Below are positions 9,218-63,551 of a DNA stretch of 64,000 bases, piece after piece (the first letter of the stretch is position 1; every line of letters starts with the position of its first letter). The notes below the pieces were generated by a model. That model did no database searches and had not been told where the DNA came from. It was given only the letters and a program-made list of their open reading frames with translations. This DNA is from Setoptus koraiensis (lineage: Eukaryota > Animalia > Arthropoda), in contig CM106586.1 in the NCBI GenBank assembly GCA_048013815.1, forward strand, positions 8,742,001 through 8,806,000, in the 5' to 3' direction. A program made the position numbers and the translations under genes.

Positions 9218-11832
9218 AGCCCCTTATTATAGCCCATTAGTAGTGCACTCCAATTAGCTTGATAATGGTCTTGTTGCTCGTGTTGCTCGTCGTTGCTGAC
9301 TTGGTCACCGCAAGCCCGCTTGGTCAGACCAACTAGGAAATTGTTTTGTTTGACAGCAGGATCACTTGTCAGCGTCACAGATCAAGGCGAGATTATTGTT
9401 ATTGAAATAACAATAGTGCTGGATTAGAGAGAACAACCTCTGTTAGTCGGTTCGTGATAATCACAATAATTGCTTTTTAATCATTGACTCGCTTATCAAT
9501 GAGCCGAACGCTTTCAAGTGGCAACTCACGCAATTCGCCGCCGACGTTATCATGCCAGTGGTGTGAGTAGGTGTAAGAGACAAGTGCACTAATTCAACAT
9601 GATGATAATAATATCAACAAAATGACAATTAGTATCACATCACACTCACACGCTATTAGTCTAATAGTATTAGAGAAAATAATGTGTATACAAACATGAC
9701 ACATGTCGCCAATGTGTAAAGATGAGAAAAAGATATATGCAGCTGCCAATGATCAATTCACTGTCTAGACAATGAGACGTTATCACGTGAACCTTGCAGT
9801 TTGTTGGTCGCAATTGATTAATTATCGCTCCTGTGTCGCTGCCTTTTGGTTTGATTTCTCGCTTTGATACGATCCTCATTTTTACGTGATGTGTGATATG
9901 ATACCACTAGTAAGCGAAGTACAAAGTGATCTATGATTCACGATACATGCCCACCGACCATGTATACGACCACCAGTGATTTCAACTTGTTAGCTGCCGT
10001 GAACTTGTCAACGCATTGTAATATTACAACGCAGCAAAAGAAAAAACAATTCCATTTTCAACAATGTCCCAGTGGTATGTTCCAACCATCACTTGTCCAA
10101 AAATTGCAACGCTAAATGGTCTGATAAGCTCATGGACCATTATGACAGTGGCTTGATCTATTGATATGCTGACGCTATCGTGCACTGATGAATATCAACT
10201 AGTTATGACTGGTTGACAATGATATTCGCAACCGGCGATAACAACCAACTAATTAGTGGTGAAATAGATCAAGACTAATTGCCCCTGAACCATATCGACG
10301 TTCCTCCAGATATGTGTTGGCCAATGTAGCTCATATCTAAAATTCAGACAGATTTATTCAGTTGGGTCGAGTGTATCAACGACAGGAAACTGATGCATGC
10401 TAGCTGTCGTGATCTCGTATCAAACGCTGTCTAGTTGCTAGCACTGTAATTAAGATTGTTGTCCTCATCCATGCTAGCCTTCAGTTGATCCGCTATCGAT
10501 CTCTCCTTTATTAATTGTTGCGCGATAATTGATGTATCAGGATCATCACGAGAGGTAGACATGTGCGCTTTGATCAGATCCTCAATATTTTATCCTTAGT
10601 CAACATCAGCTGGGCTGGTATTCACAAATACTACTTATGTAAACGGAAATTCCAACGAATATTCCTTACCTGTTGAGTTGACAGACAACATCGTTGCTAT
10701 GGACAAGTTAACGACTATTGTGTGCGTGATTGACTTTGTTGGCTTCGTATTGGCACTTGTGATTAATCGTGAATGTTGTTGTTGTCTCAGATTACCAGTA
10801 TATTTCCGATGGCATGTTCTTCAACTTGATTTTCCTCCAAATCTCTTGCCGACTGGCGAGCATCAATGGAATTTCAATGATCTCTAGTGATGTAGTGATT
10901 TACTATTTGGCAGTGATTATATCCCGACGTACTCCAAAGCATGTGATCAAACGAGTATTCATAATTATTGTGTTGCCATTAGCAGACCCATTAGATCGCT
11001 CAAGGTCCACCTGTTGCATGAATATTGAGAATTTCATGTATCAGTTAGTGCAAATCAGTTATCTTTGGTCTTCTTAGTAATTCATGACATTCACAAATGT
11101 AGATACATGTGAATATTCTTGGTCCCATGCAACAAGAGTATTTATATATAACAGCCAGATGCTTACTCTTGAGAACAATGGGTTGGATTTTGCTGTAATA
11201 TAATAATATTAATGTGCTGTCTAATGGTTTGTTGAGCTCATCCCATAGTGTTGTTATTCCCTGGGAAATTCTTTCATTCTTTCGAGATAGCTATTCAATA
11301 GATTGTGGTGTATTGTTGCCGACGATTGCCAATATCGCTAGAAAATATTAAAATCAACATGCTTACTTGACGCACGCACTGCTAACCGTCCAACGGTGGC
11401 AAAGGGATGGAAACAGCTCCAACGACTACATTATTGTCATTATTGTTATTATTATTATTATTTGTGATTGTTTGTTTGCCTGCATTATATTTATCTGTTG
11501 CTGTAAATATGTTCTCATCATAATCATACAATCATTTTTGTTTTGTAATTATAAATTATTACAATCTGAAGTGATAAGAATATCAACAATTGTTGTTTTA
11601 GTTTATTTTTGAACTATCACAAAAGCGACATTCTTGAAACTAATCATAATAATAGTAATAATATCGACAACGACAGCAACCATAATATTCTTTCATTTGG
11701 AGTTACACCATCCATAAAAGCATCTCAATTAGGAAACACATATTAACTCATCATTTGCGTATTCCATATATTTCCTTTATGCCATTTTTTCACTATACAT
11801 ATCATATTTCACAACATATCAAGGAGAAAAAA

Positions 11833-49879: not shown

Positions 49880-50343
49880 ATTGTGGGCGACGCAATGTTG
49901 GTGACTCAGATATATGCTGTATATGTATATATGTCATCATTTGAAGATTCATATTTCTGGCGCGCGCCAGATGGACTGACTGTCCGAAAAGTCATTGACG
50001 ATGCATATCAGTGAGTCTTTATCACTTGTTAACGATAATCGACAGGGTGCGAATGGAAATCATTGGGCGCTGGTAATTGAATCTGCAATATGTTGGTGCC
50101 CACCACGATCAAATGAATGAGCACACTCGGTAAGGTGAGCAAAGCAGCTACTTCTGCTAATTCAACATTGTAAGAAGCTTGTTACATTGTGTCGCTAGTG
50201 AGATAATAAGCTAAGTCAAATGAATAACGGCAGCTTGTGGCAAGCATAAATACAAGTTATCAAGAGAATATTAAAAAATCACGACTGTCGGATAAGATAC
50301 TATTGAACTAGGCCAATCCAACACAGTGCTGGTGATTTGTTGC
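49880..50343 (+). repeat. upstream duplication block U (copy 1), 5' flank of membrane gene A
   Basis: Near-identical to the reverse complement of 57964-58545, apart from an indel of about 105 bp. Confidence 0.9.
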
Positions 50344-50347
50344 GGGC

Positions 50348-50629
50348 ATGCCGCAACTTCCTCGGCCGAAGCCCGAGGAAGACCGACCCTGGATACCGAT
50401 GTCAATTATAATAGTTATAGTTATTGTGGGTTTAATTTTTGAATGTTTGATGGAATGGGGTGAGAGTCTCGCCAAATTCTATTTACTGAATAGAGTCGAG
50501 AACACAAGAGATGACCAAACACCTGATAACCCTTGGTCCCCACAACCTCTATATCCTGTCACACCTGATCAAAATAGAGATGCAAGACGGGTCAGCCAGC
50601 GAGGACCAGGCCGACCAGTTCGCCAGTGA
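50348..50629 (+). CDS. small single-pass membrane protein, family member A (93 aa)
   Basis: ATG ORF with TM WIPMSIIIVIVIVGLIFECL. Its tail PDQNRDARRVSQRGPGRPVRQ is homologous to the tails of members B-D. Confidence 0.75.
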   Translation: MPQLPRPKPEEDRPWIPMSIIIVIVIVGLIFECLMEWGESLAKFYLLNRVENTRDDQTPDNPWSPQPLYPVTPDQNRDARRVSQRGPGRPVRQ

Positions 50630-51125
50630 GCACGCCGAGAAGCAGGCTGTAGTGATGTTGATGAGATGATGCCGAGATGCAATAAATCTTATTCTTTCAC
50701 AAAATATATAATTAATTAAAATAGCCTATATCTCGTCCAAATTGATGTTTCATTCTTTGTTTCCAACCCGTACAGTTCAAAAGTTAGTTTTTCTTCAAAA
50801 AATCAAAAAGCATCAAACCTAGAATCTTCAAACTTTACCCAAAACACCATCTATATGCAGGTAAGTATGTGTGAAAAAATGAACAAGAAAGCTCGACCCG
50901 AATCCGAGATACTTACTGTTTCATTAATCTTTTCCAGCAGTGTAAGGGCTTGTCGGCTGCACTGCTGCCCGCGAGATAATGAGTTACATTGAATGTACAA
51001 CGTTTGCTGCTGGCGTGCATAAATACATGTGTCTAACAAAGTTGTAAGTGAATATTTGAAAAAAACAATTGCTAGATTGGACACAATTGGACAGGACCAA
51101 TCAAATACAGTGCTAGTGCCAAGAC

Positions 51126-51461
51126 ATGCACTGGGACCGTCATGACCCGGGACCCGAAACAGAGCGTGAATGGTGGTTTTTTGTCTACTTGGCTCTCTTT
51201 TGCTTAGCTGTGTTGGTGTTCGTTCGTTGCTCCATATGTATTTATCAATATGGATGTCAATTTTTGTGCACTAACTATTTTCTGAGAAGAGACAGCTTTT
51301 TCGCACCAGCTACAGGAGCACTTGATCACCCTCCTTCATACCCCCGAACACCCCCATACCCACCTTATGGATCACCTGACCCACCTGACCAAAACAGAGA
51401 TGATGCAAGAGACAGCAGACCGGTTAACCAGCGCGGACCAGGCCGAGCAGCACGTTATTAA
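51126..51461 (+). CDS. small single-pass membrane protein, family member B (111 aa), PPSY motif
   Basis: ATG ORF with TM WWFFVYLALFCLAVLVFV and tail HPPSYPRTPPYPPYGSPDPPDQNRDDARDSRPVNQRGPGRAARY. Confidence 0.8.
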   Translation: MHWDRHDPGPETEREWWFFVYLALFCLAVLVFVRCSICIYQYGCQFLCTNYFLRRDSFFAPATGALDHPPSYPRTPPYPPYGSPDPPDQNRDDARDSRPVNQRGPGRAARY

Positions 51462-51897
51462 GATGCTATTGAGTCGCCATTAAGATGTCACTAATTGTGT
51501 GCTGCATGACCAACAACAACCGAGAGGTAATTTTCAAGTAATTTCTGCTAATTAATACACTTGTCAGTTGCTATCTGCGAAACACAGTAACATTATTGCA
51601 TCAAATGACTTATTTGCTGCTGCCATACGCTCATCGATTCGCTCATATCTGATCAGCTGCTTCTCGAATTTCTCTTTGAGTGGCGTCCAACTAGTTTCTT
51701 GCTTCCAGTGCCATCCCGAATTGATGCCACAAAATATCCAGTCATTTGCATGCTCTCATCATACAACATTCCAAGGTTACAAAAGTTTAGACTGCTTGTT
51801 TTCAATGTGCATCGCCAACGCTTCAGCACTTACCTGTCGTCTTCATAATGGTTGTTGTTGTTGTTGTTTTCGACTATTGGACATAGTAGAGGGTCGC
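51360..51897 (+). repeat. duplication block K (copy 1): constant C-terminus plus 3' flank
   Basis: Near-identical to the first ~535 bp of 53688-54360 and, inverted, to the corresponding part of 57041-57719. Confidence 0.92.
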
Positions 51898-52588
51898 ATA
51901 GGCACGCCGAGTGGAGCCCGTTATAGAGATGACAATCGATATGATATCAATCGTGCCACACGATCAACTACAAGCGACTAGCAACCAAACGGAAGTGCCG
52001 AAGAAAGATATGGGCATATTAAAGTTGATTCTATTTGTTTGTGCGGTTTGTAAAGACTCTAGTATTGCATTATATTCAACATATGATAGATAACTGGTTA
52101 TCACTATCAGTATTAACTTGATTTGATTGCACAATACTACTCCCTATTATGACTGATTGGTATGCTGTCTAGGGCGGTGCCACAGCTTCGTTTGGCTGAT
52201 AGGCTGATAGATGGTTTTTTGTAACAATAAATGATATTCATCTGCCGCAAACAACTTTCACCATCTTGCACAAAATATTATTTCTTTTGTGGTTACGAAA
52301 GGCGCTGGGGGAAAAAAAGGCACGTAAAGCCATAATTATGTACGCGTTTGTGCAAACGATAATTGCCTACGCTATTTGCATATTTGTTTACATTTGCCTG
52401 CCTGTCTGTCTGTCTGTCCAAAGTGGCCCGGCGGAAGTATAAATATCGGCACATCGGCACACCACAACCTCACTTGTCTTTGAGATTTCAAACGAAAACC
52501 ATCGAATTCACTTCAAACTCAATCAACCTTCTAGGTCATTCTAGCTACTCTAGCACCAAACAACCCAAACGCCAAACCAAACGTCAAA

Positions 52589-53012
52589 ATGATTAAGGCA
52601 CTTGTAAGTATACTCACACTAATAGTCACTGTTACTGTTTGACATTTCTCGTGACATAATTCACAAACAAACAAGTCAATTAACTTTTACTAATTTTCAA
52701 TTTCAATTGTTTTCGTCCACAATCACACAAACAAACAATTTCAGATCTTGATTGCTGCTCTACTCGTCGTTTGCGCTGCTGTCGCATCGGCCCAATACTA
52801 CTACGCTGGATACCCAGCTTACTCGTCAGTCGGTTACGGATATGCCTATCCAGCATATGGGTAAGTGTTAACCGGTTATATCTCTATTATCAGCTAATTG
52901 ACACCAAAACACAGAGAATTGACTAACAATAAAAACTTATCTGATTTTCAACCCGATTGGACCATCCGATTGAACACACAGATACTCTGGCTACTATTAC
53001 GGAAAGAAATGA
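52589..53012 (+). CDS. secreted Tyr/Gly-rich peptide E (53 aa); exons 52589-52603, 52745-52860, 52982-53012
   Basis: Spliced product MIKAL|ILIAALLVVCAAVASA-QYYYAGYPAYSSVGYGYAYPAYG|YSGYYYGKK*. Donors are GTAAGT, acceptors CAG, and the phases (0, 2) are consistent. Confidence 0.85.
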
Positions 53013-53236
53013 GCAGTGAGACAGTTTATTGTCCCATTCTACCCATTCAATGACATCAATTGATCTTGGATCGATTGGTTCTTGACAAACGAACATTCGG
53101 ATACATTCTTGAGATAATTCAATGCGATAAAACAACAATAAAAATCTATACATCACCAATGGTGAATCATTGCAGTCAATAAGAAAAGTTTTCGTCTCCA
53201 TCCCTCTTTGTTGTCGTTGGATTGAATTTTATTGAG

Positions 53237-53284
<48 letters not shown>

Positions 53285-53462
53285 ACATATAAACCTTTCT
53301 TTCCTCTCTATTCATTCCAACAACAACCACAATATTTGAAATATAATATTTCTGTCGCGCGCAACAGCGAGAAAAGTGATTGACGCTGCATTCATGTATC
53401 AGTAAGGATCAGCTTTTTGCAATCTAATACAGTGCTGGTGATTTGTTGCAAGCACTTGAGTC

Positions 53463-53789
53463 ATGATGACAAACCAACGGACTAATTATCCTCCAGGGTT
53501 TTTTCCAGAACCACCGAAGAAGGATCCTACAGGAGTGATATTTGTTTTAGTTTTATTTGGCCTAATGCTCCTTGTAGCGTGTGCGATCGAAATAAATGGA
53601 AGGTACAAGGATTTCTATCTACTGAGATTAGCCCAAGGAGGCAGATCTTTTGCTTACAACCCACCACTTCCCCGAAACCCCCCATACCCACCTTATGGAT
53701 CACCTGACCCACCTGACCAAAACAGAGATGATGCAAGAGACAGCAGACCGGTTAACCAGCGCGGACCAGGCCGAGCAGCACGTTATTAA
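53463..53789 (+). CDS. small single-pass membrane protein, family member C (108 aa)
   Basis: ATG ORF with TM GVIFVLVLFGLMLLVACAI. The C-terminal ~35 aa are identical to member B. Confidence 0.8.
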   Translation: MMTNQRTNYPPGFFPEPPKKDPTGVIFVLVLFGLMLLVACAIEINGRYKDFYLLRLAQGGRSFAYNPPLPRNPPYPPYGSPDPPDQNRDDARDSRPVNQRGPGRAARY

Positions 53790-54360
53790 GATGCTATTGA
53801 GTCGTTATTGAGATGTCACTAATTGTGTGCCACATGACCAACAACAACCGAGAGGTAATTTTCAAGTAATTTCTGCTAATTAATACACTTGTCAGTTGCT
53901 ATCTGCGAAACACAGTAACATTATTGCATCAAATGACTTATTTGCTGCTGCCATACGCTCATCGATTCGCTCATATCTGATCAGCTGCTTCTCGAATTTC
54001 TCTTTGAGTGGCGTCCAACTAGTTTCTTGCTTCCAGTGCCATCCCGAATTGATGCCACAAAATATCCAGTCATTTGCATGCTCTCATCATACAACATTCC
54101 AAGGTTACAAAAGTTTAGACTGCTTGTTTTCAATGTGCATCGCCAACGCTTCAGCACTTACCTGTCGTCTTCATAATGGTTGTTGTTGTTGTTTTCGACT
54201 ATTGGACATAGGAGAGGGTCGCGTTTTCGCATCGCCAGCACCTGACCGTCATTGGTGTGTTATCGTGAAAGGTATACAACAGGTTGGAGTTTGGGCTGGC
54301 CAAGGTCGTTTCACACATAAAGCTTTCTTTTCTTCCTATCTATTCCAACAACAACAACAA
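53688..54360 (+). repeat. duplication block K (copy 2, extended)
   Basis: Direct repeat of 51360-51897. The extension to ~54360 is shared only with the inverted copy 57041-57719. Confidence 0.92.
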
Positions 54361-54440
54361 CGAGGTTTTGCCTACTGCATGCTTAATTGGAGTCGTTAAC
54401 TAAATCTTTTCCACCGAGAATGCCATTCTGCAACAAACTA

Positions 54441-54595
54441 TTTCTTTCTCTTTCTCTTTCTCTTTCTCTTTCTCTTTCTCTTTCTCTTTCTCTTTCTCTT
54501 TCTCTTTCTCTTTCTCTTTCTCTTTCTCTTTCTCTTTCTCTTTCTCTTTCTCTTTCTCTTTCTCTTTCTCTTTCTCTTTCTCTTTCTCTTTCTCT

Positions 54596-54670
<75 letters not shown>

Positions 54671-54680
54671 TCCCTCTCCC
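54441..54680. repeat. compound pyrimidine microsatellite (TTTCTC)n-(TC)n-(CCCTCT)-like
   Basis: About 160 bp of TTTCTC hexamer switches to about 60 bp of TC, then C-richer variants. Confidence 0.95.
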
Positions 54681-56039
54681 ACTCCCACGATATTGGCTTC
54701 GCATCAGTTTTATTTGCTTCCAGCAATACATGCTTGCCTGTACCTAGATAGACTAGACTCTTGCCGATCAATTGTGTCTCCCAATGAAGTAACCAGAAAA
54801 CTTCGCTTTCTCTCAACCTAAACAAATCACACATGCTGCCTTGAGCCACCCTGAACAAATGGTAATTTCCTGATCATTGCGAGGCACGACAAAATTGTCA
54901 CTATTTTTCTCTCTTAAAATATCTGTCGCCCCGAAAAGCCACCTCCAGTAGATTCTTCAGCACGATGTCCTTCGAGCTGGCTAATTAAACAATAGATGCA
55001 GTTCTATTCGCTCAGTTATCCAATTGAAACTAGCTAAAATAATTGAAATCGATAAATGTAACCCTTTTGGCACTTGCACTCTCCATTGGATATCCATTAA
55101 ATTGCAATTAATATTTATCAAATGAAGAATGCACTGCTGTGCAACACAATATGGGCGAGCAAGTTTTTGCTCAGCACACAAAGCGCTCTTATGTAATTTG
55201 TCGTGTTTTTCGAGTCACACGAATGGCCCTAACATCTTCTGTGCCATTTAGAAGAAAAGCCAGATTTATAGCTTTTTGATTTATGGCTTTTCGTTGATTC
55301 TCAATCACGATAAATACATTAATTATACATTCTGTGTGTATCTTACATTAATGTATTCCATGTAAGATACACATGAAATATATTAATGTATTTTACCACG
55401 AGTATATTCATAGAATTAATTAGTTAATTCGTCCAAAGGCATGTTGCTATGTCCCTGTGGGTAGAATATAGTTGAGCATCGTTATGGCTTTCTTATCTTA
55501 TCGTCGAATATGCGTTCATTCTAGAGCTTTACACTGGAACCTTTTTCTTCCCAATGCGCACAAAAGAAACTGATTTTTCCGCGATTTATCTTATCGCCAA
55601 CGAAAAGTGGTTTTCATATATTTGAGCATGCTGGTTTTTTCCATTTGTCAATGTGATCCAACAACCCGGGATGCCAATCTCTCGTGTTGTTACCTCGGGT
55701 GCAACTTAATTGAACGAAGCAGCGAAAATGGTTCAGTTAAATTGAAAAGAGGTTAGTTTATGTGTGTCGGGACAACTCTTATTGCTAATAGTTGTTTGCT
55801 AGACACATTGACTGTGGCTGCTAATGGCCAATTTGAGCCGTCCATCACCGATGGGCGCATCATCAATCCGATGATATCGGCCACTTGCGCAAATAAAATC
55901 ACTATAAAAGGGGCACGATCTGTTCGCCGATAGTCATCACTCTCACTACCATTTGACAACATCAACACCAACAACAATTGGCAGTTAAACTATTTGCTAC
56001 TTGCAAGCTGAAACAAGATCAACCACTAAACCAAACAAA

Positions 56040-56454
56040 ATGATTAAGACACTCGTAAGTCACATTACCATGAGCAACAGTTACCACCCTGATGCAACAA
56101 TTAATACTTAATAAATAACAATCAATAATCTCTAATTACCAATAATGATAATAATTACTATGACCTCGGCGATGATTTTCTCAGGCTCTCATCGCTGCTC
56201 TAGTTGTTGTTTCCGTTGCGGTCGCTAGCGCTCAATACCATTACGGTCACGGTGGCAGTGGCTACTCAGGATACGGAGGACACGGGGGATACGGATCATA
56301 CGGAGGTTACGGAGGACAAGCAGGATACGGAGCGTACAACGGCTACAATGGCGGATATAGCGCCGCCTACCCAGGCTCGTACGGATATTCATCGGGCTAT
56401 GCCTATCCCAATAACGGTTACGGTAGCTCGTACGGCGGATATTATGGCAAATAA
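56040..56454 (+). CDS. secreted Gly/Tyr-rich peptide F (94 aa); exons 56040-56054, 56185-56454
   Basis: MIKTL|ALIAALVVVSVAVASA-QYHYGHGGSGYSGYGGHGGYGSYGGYGGQAGYG...SSYGGYYGK*. It has the same 15-nt first exon with GTAAGT donor as peptides E and G. Confidence 0.88.
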
Positions 56455-57040
56455 TGAGATGTAACCATGAAAAATTTGTTTGCGGCATATGACCACTGTC
56501 TCTCTGATTCCATTGTTTATCATCCTTATCATTAGCATTATTATATATTAATAATGATAGATCAATCAATTTACTATTCAATTGGTTGATTGAGACGCAT
56601 TGCAGCGAGCTTATGACGATACTCTGTTTCACTCAAATCCAATTCAACATGCACAACATCTTGTGATGCATCAATATGTGTAACTACGTCTTGTTAGTGA
56701 AACAAGTTTCTCAATAAAACAAAACATTACGAACGTGTTTTACTCTCTACGTTTCCAAGTCAAACTGGCTGCTCGCTTATTGTCTTGTTAGCTTCTTTCG
56801 ATCACGAATTCAGACTGAACGGTCCGCTGTCAATGCAACTAACATACTCTTCATCTACTATCTGGAAACTTTTTGGCGCATTGCACAAGATTGAGATCAA
56901 TCGATGAACATGAGCTCACTACAGGAAAGAGAGAGAGCGAGGAAAATGCGAGCGGCAGGTTGACAAATTTCTACATGAGAGAACAAGCAAAGTCGGTAGG
57001 AAATATTCCAAATCGAATGGAAAAGGCGGCATAGTCAAGA

Positions 57041-57719
57041 TGGTTGTTGTTGTTGTTGGAATAGATAGGAAGAAAAGAAAGCTTTATGTGTGAAACGACC
57101 TTGGCCAGCCCAAACTCCAACCTGTTGTATACCTTTCACGATAACACGCCAATGACGGTCAGGTGCTGGCGATGCGAAAGGGCGACCCTTTTCTATGTCC
57201 AATAGTCGAAAACAACAACAACAACAACCATTATGAAGACGACAGGTAAGTGCTGAAGCGTTGGCGATGCACACTGAAAACAAGCAGTCTAAACTTTTGT
57301 AACCTTGGAATGTTGTGTGATGAGAGCATGCAAATGACTGGATATTTTGTGGCATCAATTCGGGATGGTACTGGAAGCAAGAAACTAGTTGGACGCCACT
57401 CAAAGAGAAATTCGAGAAGCAGCTGATCAGATATGAGCGAATCGATGAGCGTATGGCAGCAGCAAATAAGTCATTTGATGCAATAATGTTACTGTGTTTC
57501 GCAGATAGCAACTGACAAGTGTATTAATTAGCTGAAATTACTTGAAAATTACCTCTCGGTTGTTGTTGGTCATGTAGCACACAATTAGTGACATCTCAAT
57601 AGCGACTCAAGAGCATCTTAATAACGTGCTGCTCGGCCTGGTCCGCGCTGGTTAACCGGTCTGCTGTCTCTTGCATCATCTCTGTTTTGATCAGGTGGGT
57701 CAGGTGATCCATAAGGTGG
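57041..57719 (-). repeat. duplication block K (copy 3, inverted)
   Basis: Reverse complement of 53688-54360 with scattered substitutions. Confidence 0.92.
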
Positions 57720-57947
57720 ATGTGGGGGGTTCGGTGGGTATGGGGCGCTTGGGCCGTATGCGGGCGGTGCGATGTAACGTTTATCTACGTAATTACCTCC
57801 TCTTCTCATTAAATAGAGTACGCAGAGATATTGAATAAAGTCCCATAATATCACTATTACAACAAAAATTACAATGAGACCAAACATAATAGCAGCACAA
57901 ATCGCCGCCACCTTTTCCGGAGACGGAAGGTCATCGACCTCAGACAT
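57618..57947 (-). CDS. small single-pass membrane protein, family member D (109 aa), PPAY motif
   Basis: ATG ORF with TM VAAICAAIMFGLIVIFVVIVILW and tail APPAYGPSAPYPPNPPHPPYGSPDPPDQNRDDARDSRPVNQRGPGRAARY. Confidence 0.8.
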   Translation of the reverse strand: MSEVDDLPSPEKVAAICAAIMFGLIVIFVVIVILWDFIQYLCVLYLMRRGGNYVDKRYIAPPAYGPSAPYPPNPPHPPYGSPDPPDQNRDDARDSRPVNQRGPGRAARY

Positions 57948-57963: not shown

Positions 57964-58545
57964 GCAACAAATCACCAGCACTGTGTTGGATTGGCCTAGT
58001 TCAATTGTATCTTATCCGACAGTCGTGATTTTTTAATATTCTCTTGATAACTTGTATTTATGCTTGCCACAAGCTGCCGTTATTCATTTGACTTAGCTTA
58101 TTATCTCACAAGCGACACAATGTAACAAGCTTCTTACAATGTTGAATTAGCAGAAGTAGCTGCTTTGCTCACCTTGCCGAGTGCGCTCATTCATTTGATC
58201 GTGGTGGGCACCAACATATTGCAGATTCAATTACCAGCGCCCAATGATTTCCATTCGCACCCTGTCGATTATCGTTAACAAGTGATAGGCACCTCCTAGA
58301 ATGTTTGTCTCTATATTTGGATATTGAGCAGTTGCCGACTTGCTCGAATTTTCATAAATCTTCAAGGTGAACCAGCGAAAAGATGAGCTCATCCTCACTG
58401 ATATGCATCGTCAATGACTTTTCGGACAGTCAGTCCATCTGGCGCGCGCCAGAAATATGAATCTTCAAATGATGTATATGATATATATACATAGACAGCA
58501 TATATCTGAGTCACCGACATTGCATCGCCCACAATGAAAGATTTG
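57964..58545 (-). repeat. upstream duplication block U (copy 2, inverted), 5' flank of gene D
   Basis: Reverse complement of 49880-50343, with about 105 extra bases at ~58288-58396. Confidence 0.9.
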
Positions 58546-58959
58546 AAGAAAACCCTGAAACTATTCTGACTCTAGCGGAGAGGACAAGTTTTGTGAGAAA
58601 AAGAAGACAAAATTTTCGTTGCTTGTGATGTTCGCATCGCCATTGGCGATGCGAATGTTTTTATTGTTGTTTTTTTAGCTTTGTACACTCTCACAAACAC
58701 TTGCGAATGGCAAAAATGCTCGACATTTGTTGTTGTTAATGTCTCGTGTTGTTTGCTCTATTCTTTTGGGGCCCTGTAAAGAATAGTGGCAATAGTGATG
58801 GTGTTGCAAATAGTTAGTTGAAACCATTGTAAATAGTAGTGAGAGTGATTCATACAAAGTTAGTGACAATATCAGCTAATTGATATGTGTTTAACATGTT
58901 GTGTTGGTTGAATTTATGTCATGGGATGTGTAAAATGGGAGAAGAAATTAACTCGCTCC

Positions 58960-59365
58960 TCATTTCTTGCCATAATAGGCTGGGTAGGCAGCATATCTGT
59001 GTGAATGGAAGAAGGCGATCGGGTTAGTTGATTTGATTTACTTAGTTGTTGGCGAATATTTGGCATTTGAGGAGTCTAATCGTAAACACTTACCCATATG
59101 ATGGATAGGCATATCCGTAACCGACTGACGAGTAAGCTGGGTATCCAGCGTAGTAGTATTGGGCCGATGCGACAGCAGCGCAAACGACGAGTAGAGCAGC
59201 AATCAAGATCTGAAATTGTTTGTTTGTGTGATTGTGGACGAAAACAATTGAAATTGAAAATTAGTAAAAGTTAATTGACTTGTTTGTTTGTGAATTATGT
59301 CACGAGAAATGTCAAACAGTAACAGTGACTATTAGTGTGAGTATACTTACAAGTGCCTTAATCAT
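58960..59365 (-). CDS. secreted Tyr/Gly-rich peptide G (55 aa); exons 59365-59351, 59209-59094, 58996-58960
   Basis: MIKAL|ILIAALLVVCAAVASA-QYYYAGYPAYSSVGYGYAYPSYG|YAAYPAYYGKK*. Exon 1 through exon 2 is an inverted near-copy of peptide E. Confidence 0.85.
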
Positions 59366-59933
59366 TTTGACGTTTGGTTTGGCGTTTGGGTTGTTTGGTG
59401 CTAGAGTAGCTAGAATGACCTAGAAGGTTGATTGAGTTTGAAGTGAATTCGATGGTTTTCGTTTGAAATCTCAAAGACAAGTGAGGTTGTGGTGTGCCGA
59501 TGTGCCGATATTTATACTTCCGCCGGGCCACTTTGGACAGACAGACAGACAGGCAGACGAATGTAAACAAATATGCAAATAGCGTAGGCAAAGTATCGGT
59601 TGCACAAGCTCAAGCTAGCTATGTGGCCACTTAATTATGGCCTATCCCCCCTTCCCCCGTGTTGCATAGGCAAAAAAGAACAGATATTTCGCGCAAGATA
59701 CTATCTTGAAGATAGTGAAAGTTGTTAAAAGATGAAGCATTATCGATCATTGCTAGCCCGGCTCGGCGAAACGCCGCCCATGCCACACGGCGGCTGTTGT
59801 TGTTGCTGCTGTTATCATTATTATGTAAGATGACCTTCAATTTCGCTTCCCCATCTTCTGACAGCCAGTTGTGGATAAAGAGTTGCGCCTGTCAGTTTTA
59901 TTTTATCTCTCTCTCTCTCTTTCTAGACTCTAG

Positions 59934-63011: not shown

Positions 63012-63551
63012 CTAGATTTTGTTTATTTTCCACTGTTCGTGCTGCTCCTGTTCTTGATAGGCCAATATAGAATCCAGCAATCGTATGTATTTAATGGCTA
63101 CTCGTAATATCTCGTTCTTGCTCAATTTCTTGTCTGGCGGATAAGTGGGAACTAGGCGCCTCAAGTTGGCGAATGCCTTGTTGACATTTTGTTGGCGCCA
63201 TCGTTCACGATTGTTCGTGGAGTTTCGTTTCTTTCCACTGTGCGAATGATTATTATTACTAGTAGTTCGTTGCAATGAGCTCATTCCTTCACCTTTTATT
63301 CGCTTGGAATTATCTCTCGTGTTTTCTTTTATTCTAGCGAGACGTATGTTGCTCTTCAGTAGCGACGAGTTGCACGAAATGGACCGTTTTGCAGTGATCT
63401 TGTTCTTCAAGTTGATCACCGCCATTTGATCCTCTACCTTGCTGATTTCTTCGCTTGAGATAGCCATAGGAGATGAAATGCTCGATGCAAACGACGATGA
63501 CGAACTTGACACATTGTTCACATCTGGCGTACTTTCAGCCGGACTGGACAT
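63012..63551 (-). CDS. TAL1: SCL/TAL1/LYL1-class bHLH transcription factor (intronless, 179 aa)
   Basis: [45 protein letters not shown] matches the SCL-family signature [42 protein letters not shown] 63551 is the first in-frame ATG after an upstream stop. Confidence 0.92.

Follow-up and report, generated by a model that had tools for sequence, protein, structure and literature searches.

How does a small gene family come to combine identical C-terminal tails with N-terminal halves that can barely be aligned? The question is raised by four short, single-exon genes, which we refer to as A, B, C and D, clustered within 8 kb of a 64,000-nucleotide (nt) stretch of the Setoptus koraiensis genome (contig CM106586.1 of assembly GCA_048013815.1, positions 8,742,001 to 8,806,000), which we call the window and in whose coordinates all positions below are given. 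An earlier reading of this DNA (the original prediction) had proposed a diversifying set of adaptors, in which a variable transmembrane (TM) part selects a target and a constant tail recruits an effector. Our results agree with it in that A–D form a real orphan family of bitopic proteins with proline/tyrosine-rich tails, the tail being conserved in A as well, but give no support to the tail as an effector module or to a diversifying set. It appears probable that A–D are old tandem paralogues which were patched by ectopic gene conversion or segmental duplication and which encode membrane-tethered scaffolds of linear motifs; the constant/variable pattern would then be mainly a product of genome dynamics.

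Four micro-membrane protein genes within 8 kb

Gene A (50348–50629, + strand) would encode 93 amino acids (aa), with a TM segment at residues ~16–34, a P-x-PE N-terminus, the juxtamembrane sequence KFYLLNR and a diverged tail from which a canonical PY motif is absent. Gene B (51126–51461, +) would encode 111 aa, with a TM segment at ~19–37, NYFLRR, PPSY at residues 69–72 and a last stretch of 33 aa in common with C and D. This same tail ends gene C (53463–53789, +; 108 aa; TM ~24–42), which has DFYLLR and, at residues 67–70, PPLP without PPxY, and gene D (57618–57947, − strand; 109 aa; TM ~16–34), which has VLYLMRR and PPAY at residues 61–64. Coordinates, strands, lengths and the four post-TM motifs are all as the original prediction had listed them. 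Its claim of one TM segment per protein also holds, as each protein has a single strongly hydrophobic 19-residue window within residues ~16–42 (Kyte-Doolittle mean 2.5–3.4), a value matched by 0 of 4000 residue shuffles for each of the four; we detected no signal peptide and only this single helix in any of them. A Y-L-[LM]-x-R juxtamembrane motif is present in each, and a P-x-PE motif, absent from the earlier list, is invariant in A–D directly N-terminal of the helix. For D, an AlphaFold2 model built on the four-sequence alignment consists of one helix at residues 10–49, with a predicted local distance difference test (pLDDT) score of 91–96 at residues 11–40, followed by low-confidence coil. 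Several cysteines adjoin the helix in B and D. The charges flanking the helix on its N and C sides (−3 vs. +1 in B and D) favour an orientation with the N-terminus outside and the tail in the cytosol for these two proteins, and are weakly in favour of the same orientation for C (0 vs. +2), whilst those of A are 0 vs. 0.

Several properties of the DNA indicate that A–D are very probably genuine coding genes. In dinucleotide shuffles the variable part of each stays open with a probability of 0.009–0.033; as these parts have no alignable DNA in common they count as independent trials, and the joint probability is ~7e-8. An in-frame stop lies 1–4 codons 5′ of each ATG (giving open frames of 97, 114, 109 and 111 aa for A, B, C and D), and a purine occupies position −3 of the ATG in all four. 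Similarly, the guanine-cytosine (GC) content at the three codon positions falls in the order GC1 > GC2 > GC3 in every gene, with a GC3 of 0.35–0.39, as in the neighbouring EGF and LRR genes.

Near-identical blocks at the 3′ and 5′ ends

As had been observed before, B, C and D end in the same 33 residues and the tail of A is diverged; relative to theirs it has a gap of 4 residues. It had been overlooked that the DNA identity of B, C and D continues about 450–570 nt past the stop codon. The shared 3′ block at B (51337–51897, +) comprises the last ~41 codons of the gene, a 99-nt spacer and an antisense open-reading frame (ORF), here named E, with its upstream sequence. The copy at C (53670–54361, +) is ~140 nt longer, by an extension common to D only, and the copy at D (57043–57742, −) is inverted. 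The three are 97–98% identical over 556–689 nt. The onset of identity agrees to within 10 nt among the copies and lies ~41 codons from the stop, after a ~40-nt zone of decaying similarity, whereas the exit from the block differs, B leaving at alignment column 600 (~435 nt after its stop) and C and D at column 743. As the identity of the tails runs through a non-coding flank and an antisense ORF, it points to recent gene conversion or duplication and not only to selection for an effector module. The spacer between the convergent stop codons is ~95% identical in every pair against 98–100% in the tail coding sequence, which implies that the copying is not brand-new and that the tail has been held since.

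The proportion of synonymous differences (pS) is 0–0.08 in the tails of B, C and D and 0.60–0.80 in the cores of the family. Gene A lies outside the copied block, yet its tail compared with that of B gives a nonsynonymous rate (dN) of 0.227 against a synonymous rate (dS) of 0.638, or a dN/dS of ~0.36 over 26 codons, which argues that the tail is a genuinely conserved protein feature. The contrast in dN/dS between constant and variable parts that had been proposed as a check can be drawn on the tail side with this value; in the variable part the proportion of nonsynonymous differences (pN) is below pS, both being saturated. Two other origins of the block were considered and rejected. A transposable element is ruled out by the confinement of the block to this locus, and read-through or splicing of the tail into same-strand ORFs of 137–167 aa is excluded by stops that close the frame on either side of a candidate 41-nt intron.

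A second pair of copies, likewise overlooked, lies at the other end of the genes. The 5′ flank of A (49851–50343, +) recurs as an inverted copy upstream of D (57964–58564, −), with 98.8% identity over 324 nt and then 92% over 171 nt. A and D face each other, and the identity stops 4 nt before the ATG of A and 16 nt before that of D, where a conserved upstream element also stops. This 22-nt element, CCAATCNAANACAGTGCTNGTG, missing from the original prediction, may be promoter-proximal or part of the 5′ untranslated region, and sits 15–40 nt 5′ of each ATG: at 50313–50334 (+) for A, 51097–51118 (+) for B, 53419–53440 (+, one mismatch) for C and 57973–57994 (−) for D. A search of 48.8 Mb allowing up to 2 mismatches returned the four genes and one further match (2 mismatches, same chromosome), which has no related ORF, whilst the reversed control pattern returned none. 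The element thus offers a handle for studying how A–D are regulated. As A and D share a 5′ flank and B, C and D share a 3′ block, D is a mosaic of three parts, in which a core of its own is joined to a promoter flank resembling that of A and to a tail and 3′ flank like those of B and C.

Within the 5′ flanks, inverted arms at 50020–50343 and 57964–58287 are 99% identical and bracket all four genes. Homologous recombination between them would invert a 7.6-kb segment; as the arms are alike for ~500 nt, the outcome would be set by the sequences outside them.

ORF E has 63 codons and occurs three times in the genome, only alongside B (51564–51755, −), C (53892–54083, −) and D (57324–57515, +), convergent with each gene, its stop codon ~100 nt from theirs. 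The products of the copies at B and C are the same, and that at D has one H-to-Y difference. Within the block E varies least, with 1 of 192 columns variable against 7 of 99 in the spacer (Fisher 0.0026). A candidate first exon consists of an ATG and 10 nt, followed by a GTAAGT donor, a 79-nt candidate intron and a weak, in-frame acceptor at the start of the ORF, and E may thus be a putative two-exon micro-gene. Searched as the 63-codon exon alone, E gave no Pfam match, no Atlas match and a low recognition score, and neither strand gave an RNA structure signal (folding z of −0.9 and −1.25).

The variable cores

The cores are barely alignable, in agreement with the original prediction: against segment-wise shuffles their similarity reaches z-scores of 0.0–3.2, and B and C are at chance (z 0.02). 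Their pN is 0.45–0.54, below the pS given above, and the alignment on which both saturated values depend is unreliable. With synonymous sites saturated, diversifying selection is neither shown nor needed, and the proposal of a diversifying set gained no support. The data, four saturated paralogues from a single genome, do not allow relaxed constraint to be distinguished from diversifying selection.

Proline/tyrosine motifs in the tails

WW domains bind the consensus P/L-P-x-Y, and Rcr1 is a plasma-membrane adaptor of Rsp5 (PMC7401822). Canonical PPxY motifs are present only in B and D, as the original prediction had listed them. It had missed that both lie outside the identical tail, in the linker that precedes it; PPLP takes this linker position in C, and A has no canonical motif. 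The identical tail is without a canonical [LP]PxY and holds PPY-PPY, which is outside the consensus; the tails are about one quarter proline and contain 4–6 tyrosines. The constant tail lacks the motif, and its identity reflects DNA copying that runs into the 3′ flank; the claim that it is the effector-recruiting module finds no support. WW domains are represented in the genome, as in any animal, by at least 21 matches, some of them in open frames with several WW copies.

The tail might present a series of short linear motifs at the membrane that anchors it. B and D would contribute PPxY and C PPLP, whilst PPY/SP is found in all three of B, C and D. WW-domain proteins, for example Nedd4-type ligases, could be recruited to a membrane by these motifs, as they are by Rcr1, PMEPA1 and Commissureless, none of which is a detectable relative of A–D. 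Such an adaptor role is the likeliest way of working that we can offer, but it is a tentative guess and rather doubtful. Yeast Rcr1/Rcr2 (PF12273) and Pin2 (PSI_induc_2) resemble A–D in their small, single-pass plan, with a short N-terminus without signal peptide, one TM segment and a disordered cytosolic tail bearing PY motifs. They differ in that they are fungal families, whereas the genome here is that of an animal, in that A–D have no Pfam match, and in that only B and D have a PY motif. Commissureless, PMEPA1/TMEPAI and NDFIP1/2 (NEDD4_Bsd2) work by the model proposed for B and D, being membrane-anchored proteins whose cytosolic PPxY or LPxY motifs bring WW-domain ligases to partner membrane proteins. 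Commissureless has ~370 aa and NDFIP has three TM segments, whilst A–D have 93–111 aa, lack the motif in the conserved part of the tail and show no Pfam match to any of these proteins.

Family size and relatives

The assembly comprises 48.76 Mb in two contigs and was searched in full. DNA and six-frame protein searches found only A–D, so the genome-wide member count that had been suggested as a check gives a family of four. Pfam, the second suggested check, matched no family: for all four proteins, searches at E ≤ 0.1 and E ≤ 10 returned only four unrelated TM-type matches (E 0.04–0.5). At E ≤ 10, hmmscan of A–D listed neither RCR (PF12273) nor PSI_induc_2 (PF27934), and the Commissureless, NDFIP/Bsd2, WBP1 and Shisa families were likewise not among the Pfam matches. 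None of the four sequences (0 of 4) is present in an exact look-up of a 15-billion-protein collection, and a word-index homologue search with D returned nothing. Searching 1.84 billion representatives exhaustively with a profile of the four-sequence alignment gave one borderline match (P0001, E 6.8e-4). We treat P0001 as a chance match, as it is a singleton (SRA run SRR3989338) with no contig on record, its match is confined to the charged end of the tail, and it has no counterpart in the genome; it is a protein of 111 aa in which a motif resembling that charged end (PD-x-NRD-x-ARD) is repeated twice. When metagenome contigs were scanned with the tail pattern, the 216 stretches that matched included no relative, and a profile search of the PDB returned TM-juxtamembrane peptides only. 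In the Atlas feature search the nearest clusters include the fungal small-protein families PSI_induc_2 (0.84) and RCR (0.77); all scores were at most 0.84, below the level that counts as more than a lead, and we take them as leads only. The family was thus correctly described as unrecognised, as neither Pfam nor the word search nor the profile search gave a credible relative.

Eriophyoid sequences are present in the searched collection, as shown by two controls, Fragariocoptes setiger and a Logan run with a full-length, 75% identical relative of the bHLH gene in the window. The distance to this relative, ~75% nucleotide identity even inside the bHLH coding sequence, implies that a fast-evolving protein of 100 residues could go undetected; the absence of matches therefore means that there is no detectable relative, not that the family is species-specific. 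The same run allowed a test of synteny, as the bHLH relative lies on a 10.6-kb Logan contig, which ends 700 nt short on the side that faces the family; no tblastn match to the family was found on this contig. Judged by sequence, A–D are a real, lineage-restricted and sequence-novel four-member family of micro-membrane proteins without detectable relatives.

With its size, its two contigs and a GPCR whose best relative is eriophyoid, the genome reads as that of an eriophyoid-type mite; published eriophyoid genomes span 32–47 Mb on two chromosomes and are mostly intronless. A comparable eriophyoid assembly has ~6,000 genes (PMC11920263). If expressed, A–D would add four unannotated micro-membrane proteins to a genome of about that gene number, and for a genome this reduced to retain a four-copy orphan family suggests a role specific to the lineage.

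Competing explanations

The history that we consider probable would run as follows. A–D would be old paralogues with saturated cores, in which selection preserves no more than the membrane helix, some motif positions, the tail and the upstream element of 22 nt. More recently, B, C and D would have received the 3′ block, with tail, spacer and ORF E, by ectopic gene conversion or segmental duplication, and the same recent copying would have placed the 5′ flank onto A and D; the block edges would fall where alignable sequence ends, at the upstream motif and at the tail. The resulting protein would have an N-terminus of ~10–23 residues, probably extracytoplasmic and including P-x-PE, a TM segment continuing as one long helix into the Y-L-[LM]-x-R motif, and a disordered, charged, Pro/Tyr-rich tail of ~45–60 residues, probably cytosolic. 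In line with gene conversion, the identity spans coding and non-coding DNA, the tract edges differ between pairs, and the sequence adjoining the tracts is much older, with saturated cores that for B and C are at chance similarity. Paralogues patched by ectopic conversion resemble A–D in having blocks of 97–99% identity, in direct and inverted orientation, with sharp edges beside anciently different sequence. A–D depart from the usual conversion-resistant island in that blocks lie on both sides of the divergent island and different pairs share different flanks. Families of the conotoxin-precursor type also have conserved 5′ and 3′ parts around an unalignable core, and in these diversifying selection is documented; A–D differ from them in having four copies, saturated sites and membrane proteins rather than secreted peptides. 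The locus would be a clean, small case in which patchy gene conversion yields an apparent constant/variable design without a dedicated mechanism, and as such a caution for interpreting constant/variable patterns from sequence alone.

Several observations weigh against this account. The edge of the block lies at nearly the same place in all three tail copies, which fits gene conversion only by appeal to where homology ends. Upstream of B and D, non-coding DNA still aligns (67% over 146 nt) whilst the coding cores do not; the core might thus be changing no more slowly than neutral DNA, and a core faster than neutral could favour diversifying selection over plain age. The idea of a linear-motif scaffold is weakened by the presence of a PY motif in only two of the four members, and by the probability of 0.155 that at least two of four proteins of this composition carry one by chance. 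The topology of A and C, where flank charges are neutral, is uncertain, and the expression of A–D is something that we infer from sequence, no orthologue having been found.

The strongest form of the original prediction holds that A–D are diversifying Nedd4-type PY adaptors, in which a hypervariable TM and ecto part picks the target, the constant tail recruits the ligase and selection keeps the cassette layout. The architecture does fit single-pass PY adaptors, WW-domain proteins exist in the genome, the tail of A is under purifying selection, and the flanks are conserved around a core whose similarity is no better than chance even for B and C and which aligns less well than the non-coding DNA upstream of B. 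Even so we consider it unlikely, because the constant tail has no [LP]PxY, the two motifs in the B and D linkers are at chance level, and the tail identity is DNA identity that runs into a non-coding flank; pN is below pS with both saturated and gives no sign of positive selection, only four members exist genome-wide, and the ecto part amounts to merely 10–23 residues. We think it very unlikely that the locus goes further and acts as a site of modular exchange, with recombination anchored in the upstream element, specific to the family, and in the constant tail and exchanging promoters, hypervariable membrane/ecto cores and tails (with E) between copies, whilst the cores diversify under selection for different membrane targets and the tail passes these targets to WW-domain ligases. 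If true, an animal with a streamlined genome would possess a small adaptor set built on variable recognition and a constant effector.

Other readings shift the weight to different parts of the locus. What maintains the similarity of the block copies might be the antisense unit E, or an overlapping pair of 3′ untranslated regions; the tails of B, C and D would then be passengers in the conversion of E. Its low variability relative to the spacer, its start codon and GTAAGT upstream with an in-frame acceptor, and its occurrence only beside B, C and D speak for this; we nevertheless give it a small chance, since A has no downstream E and yet keeps its tail at the protein level, and since E has a weak acceptor, a low recognition score, no Pfam or Atlas match and no RNA structure signal on either strand. 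An equally small chance attaches to A–D as micropeptide regulators, whose helix would act on a pump, channel or receptor, much as phospholamban/sarcolamban or FXYD proteins do, with the tail serving only sorting or turnover. The helix with Y-L-[LM]-x-R is the only structured and confidently predicted part, cysteines lie beside it in B and D, and the PDB search yielded TM-juxtamembrane peptides alone, but the helix is the least conserved part in sequence and the tail the most conserved at the protein level, and no similarity to any micropeptide-regulator family was found. Finally, A–D could be chance ORFs in a patchwork of repeated non-coding DNA. Unsupported ORFs of 92–167 aa do occur in the same 10-kb stretch (on the same strand in the 3′ block, and in microsatellite), and the public protein collection lacks an exact match to any of the four. 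This is the least probable reading, given the joint open-frame probability, the hydrophobic window that no shuffle matched in any of the four, the common codon-position GC pattern, the purine at −3 and the stop just upstream of each ATG, the upstream motif unique to A–D and the excess of dS over dN in the tail of A.

Genomic setting and other repeats

An inverted repeat pair at 52348–53061 and 58911–59607, 89% identical overall with a 510-nt core at 99%, has one copy between B and C and the other past D's 5′ flank; it yielded no convincing ORF or RNA. Just after the 3′ block of C, a (TCTTTC)37 array (54443–54666) passes into (TC)n to ~54700, and a (TC)21 run lies upstream of C (53238–53280); these tracts generate long spurious ORFs on both strands. 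Between C and D, at 56204–56632, overlapping ORFs of 86 aa (+) and 135 aa (−) lie over a 9-nt tandem repeat (56268–56332), and the 135-aa ORF has no Pfam match. Rfam and ARAGORN found no structured RNA or tRNA in the window.

The other gene content of the window consists of a rhodopsin-type G-protein-coupled receptor (GPCR), calcium-binding EGF repeats, LRR repeats, an alpha/beta hydrolase and the bHLH gene, and shows the DNA to be that of an animal; no viral or toxin-like sequence was encountered. The GPCR (28111–29892, +) is single-exon, encodes 593 aa and is closest to cardioacceleratory peptide receptors, with its best match in F. setiger. Base composition is strongly heterogeneous, the GPCR having a GC3 of 0.75 against 0.35–0.39 for the other window genes, and the first 8 kb a GC content of 55–63%. 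The bHLH gene (63012–63551, −) has TAL1/HLH-like matches, and its 75% identical relative lies at 9401–9946 of the Logan contig, from run SRR33593474, where its neighbours are RIO1, DUF7042–7044 and BRAP2 genes. Two non-coding patches flanking the bHLH gene also align to this contig, at ~74–75% identity.

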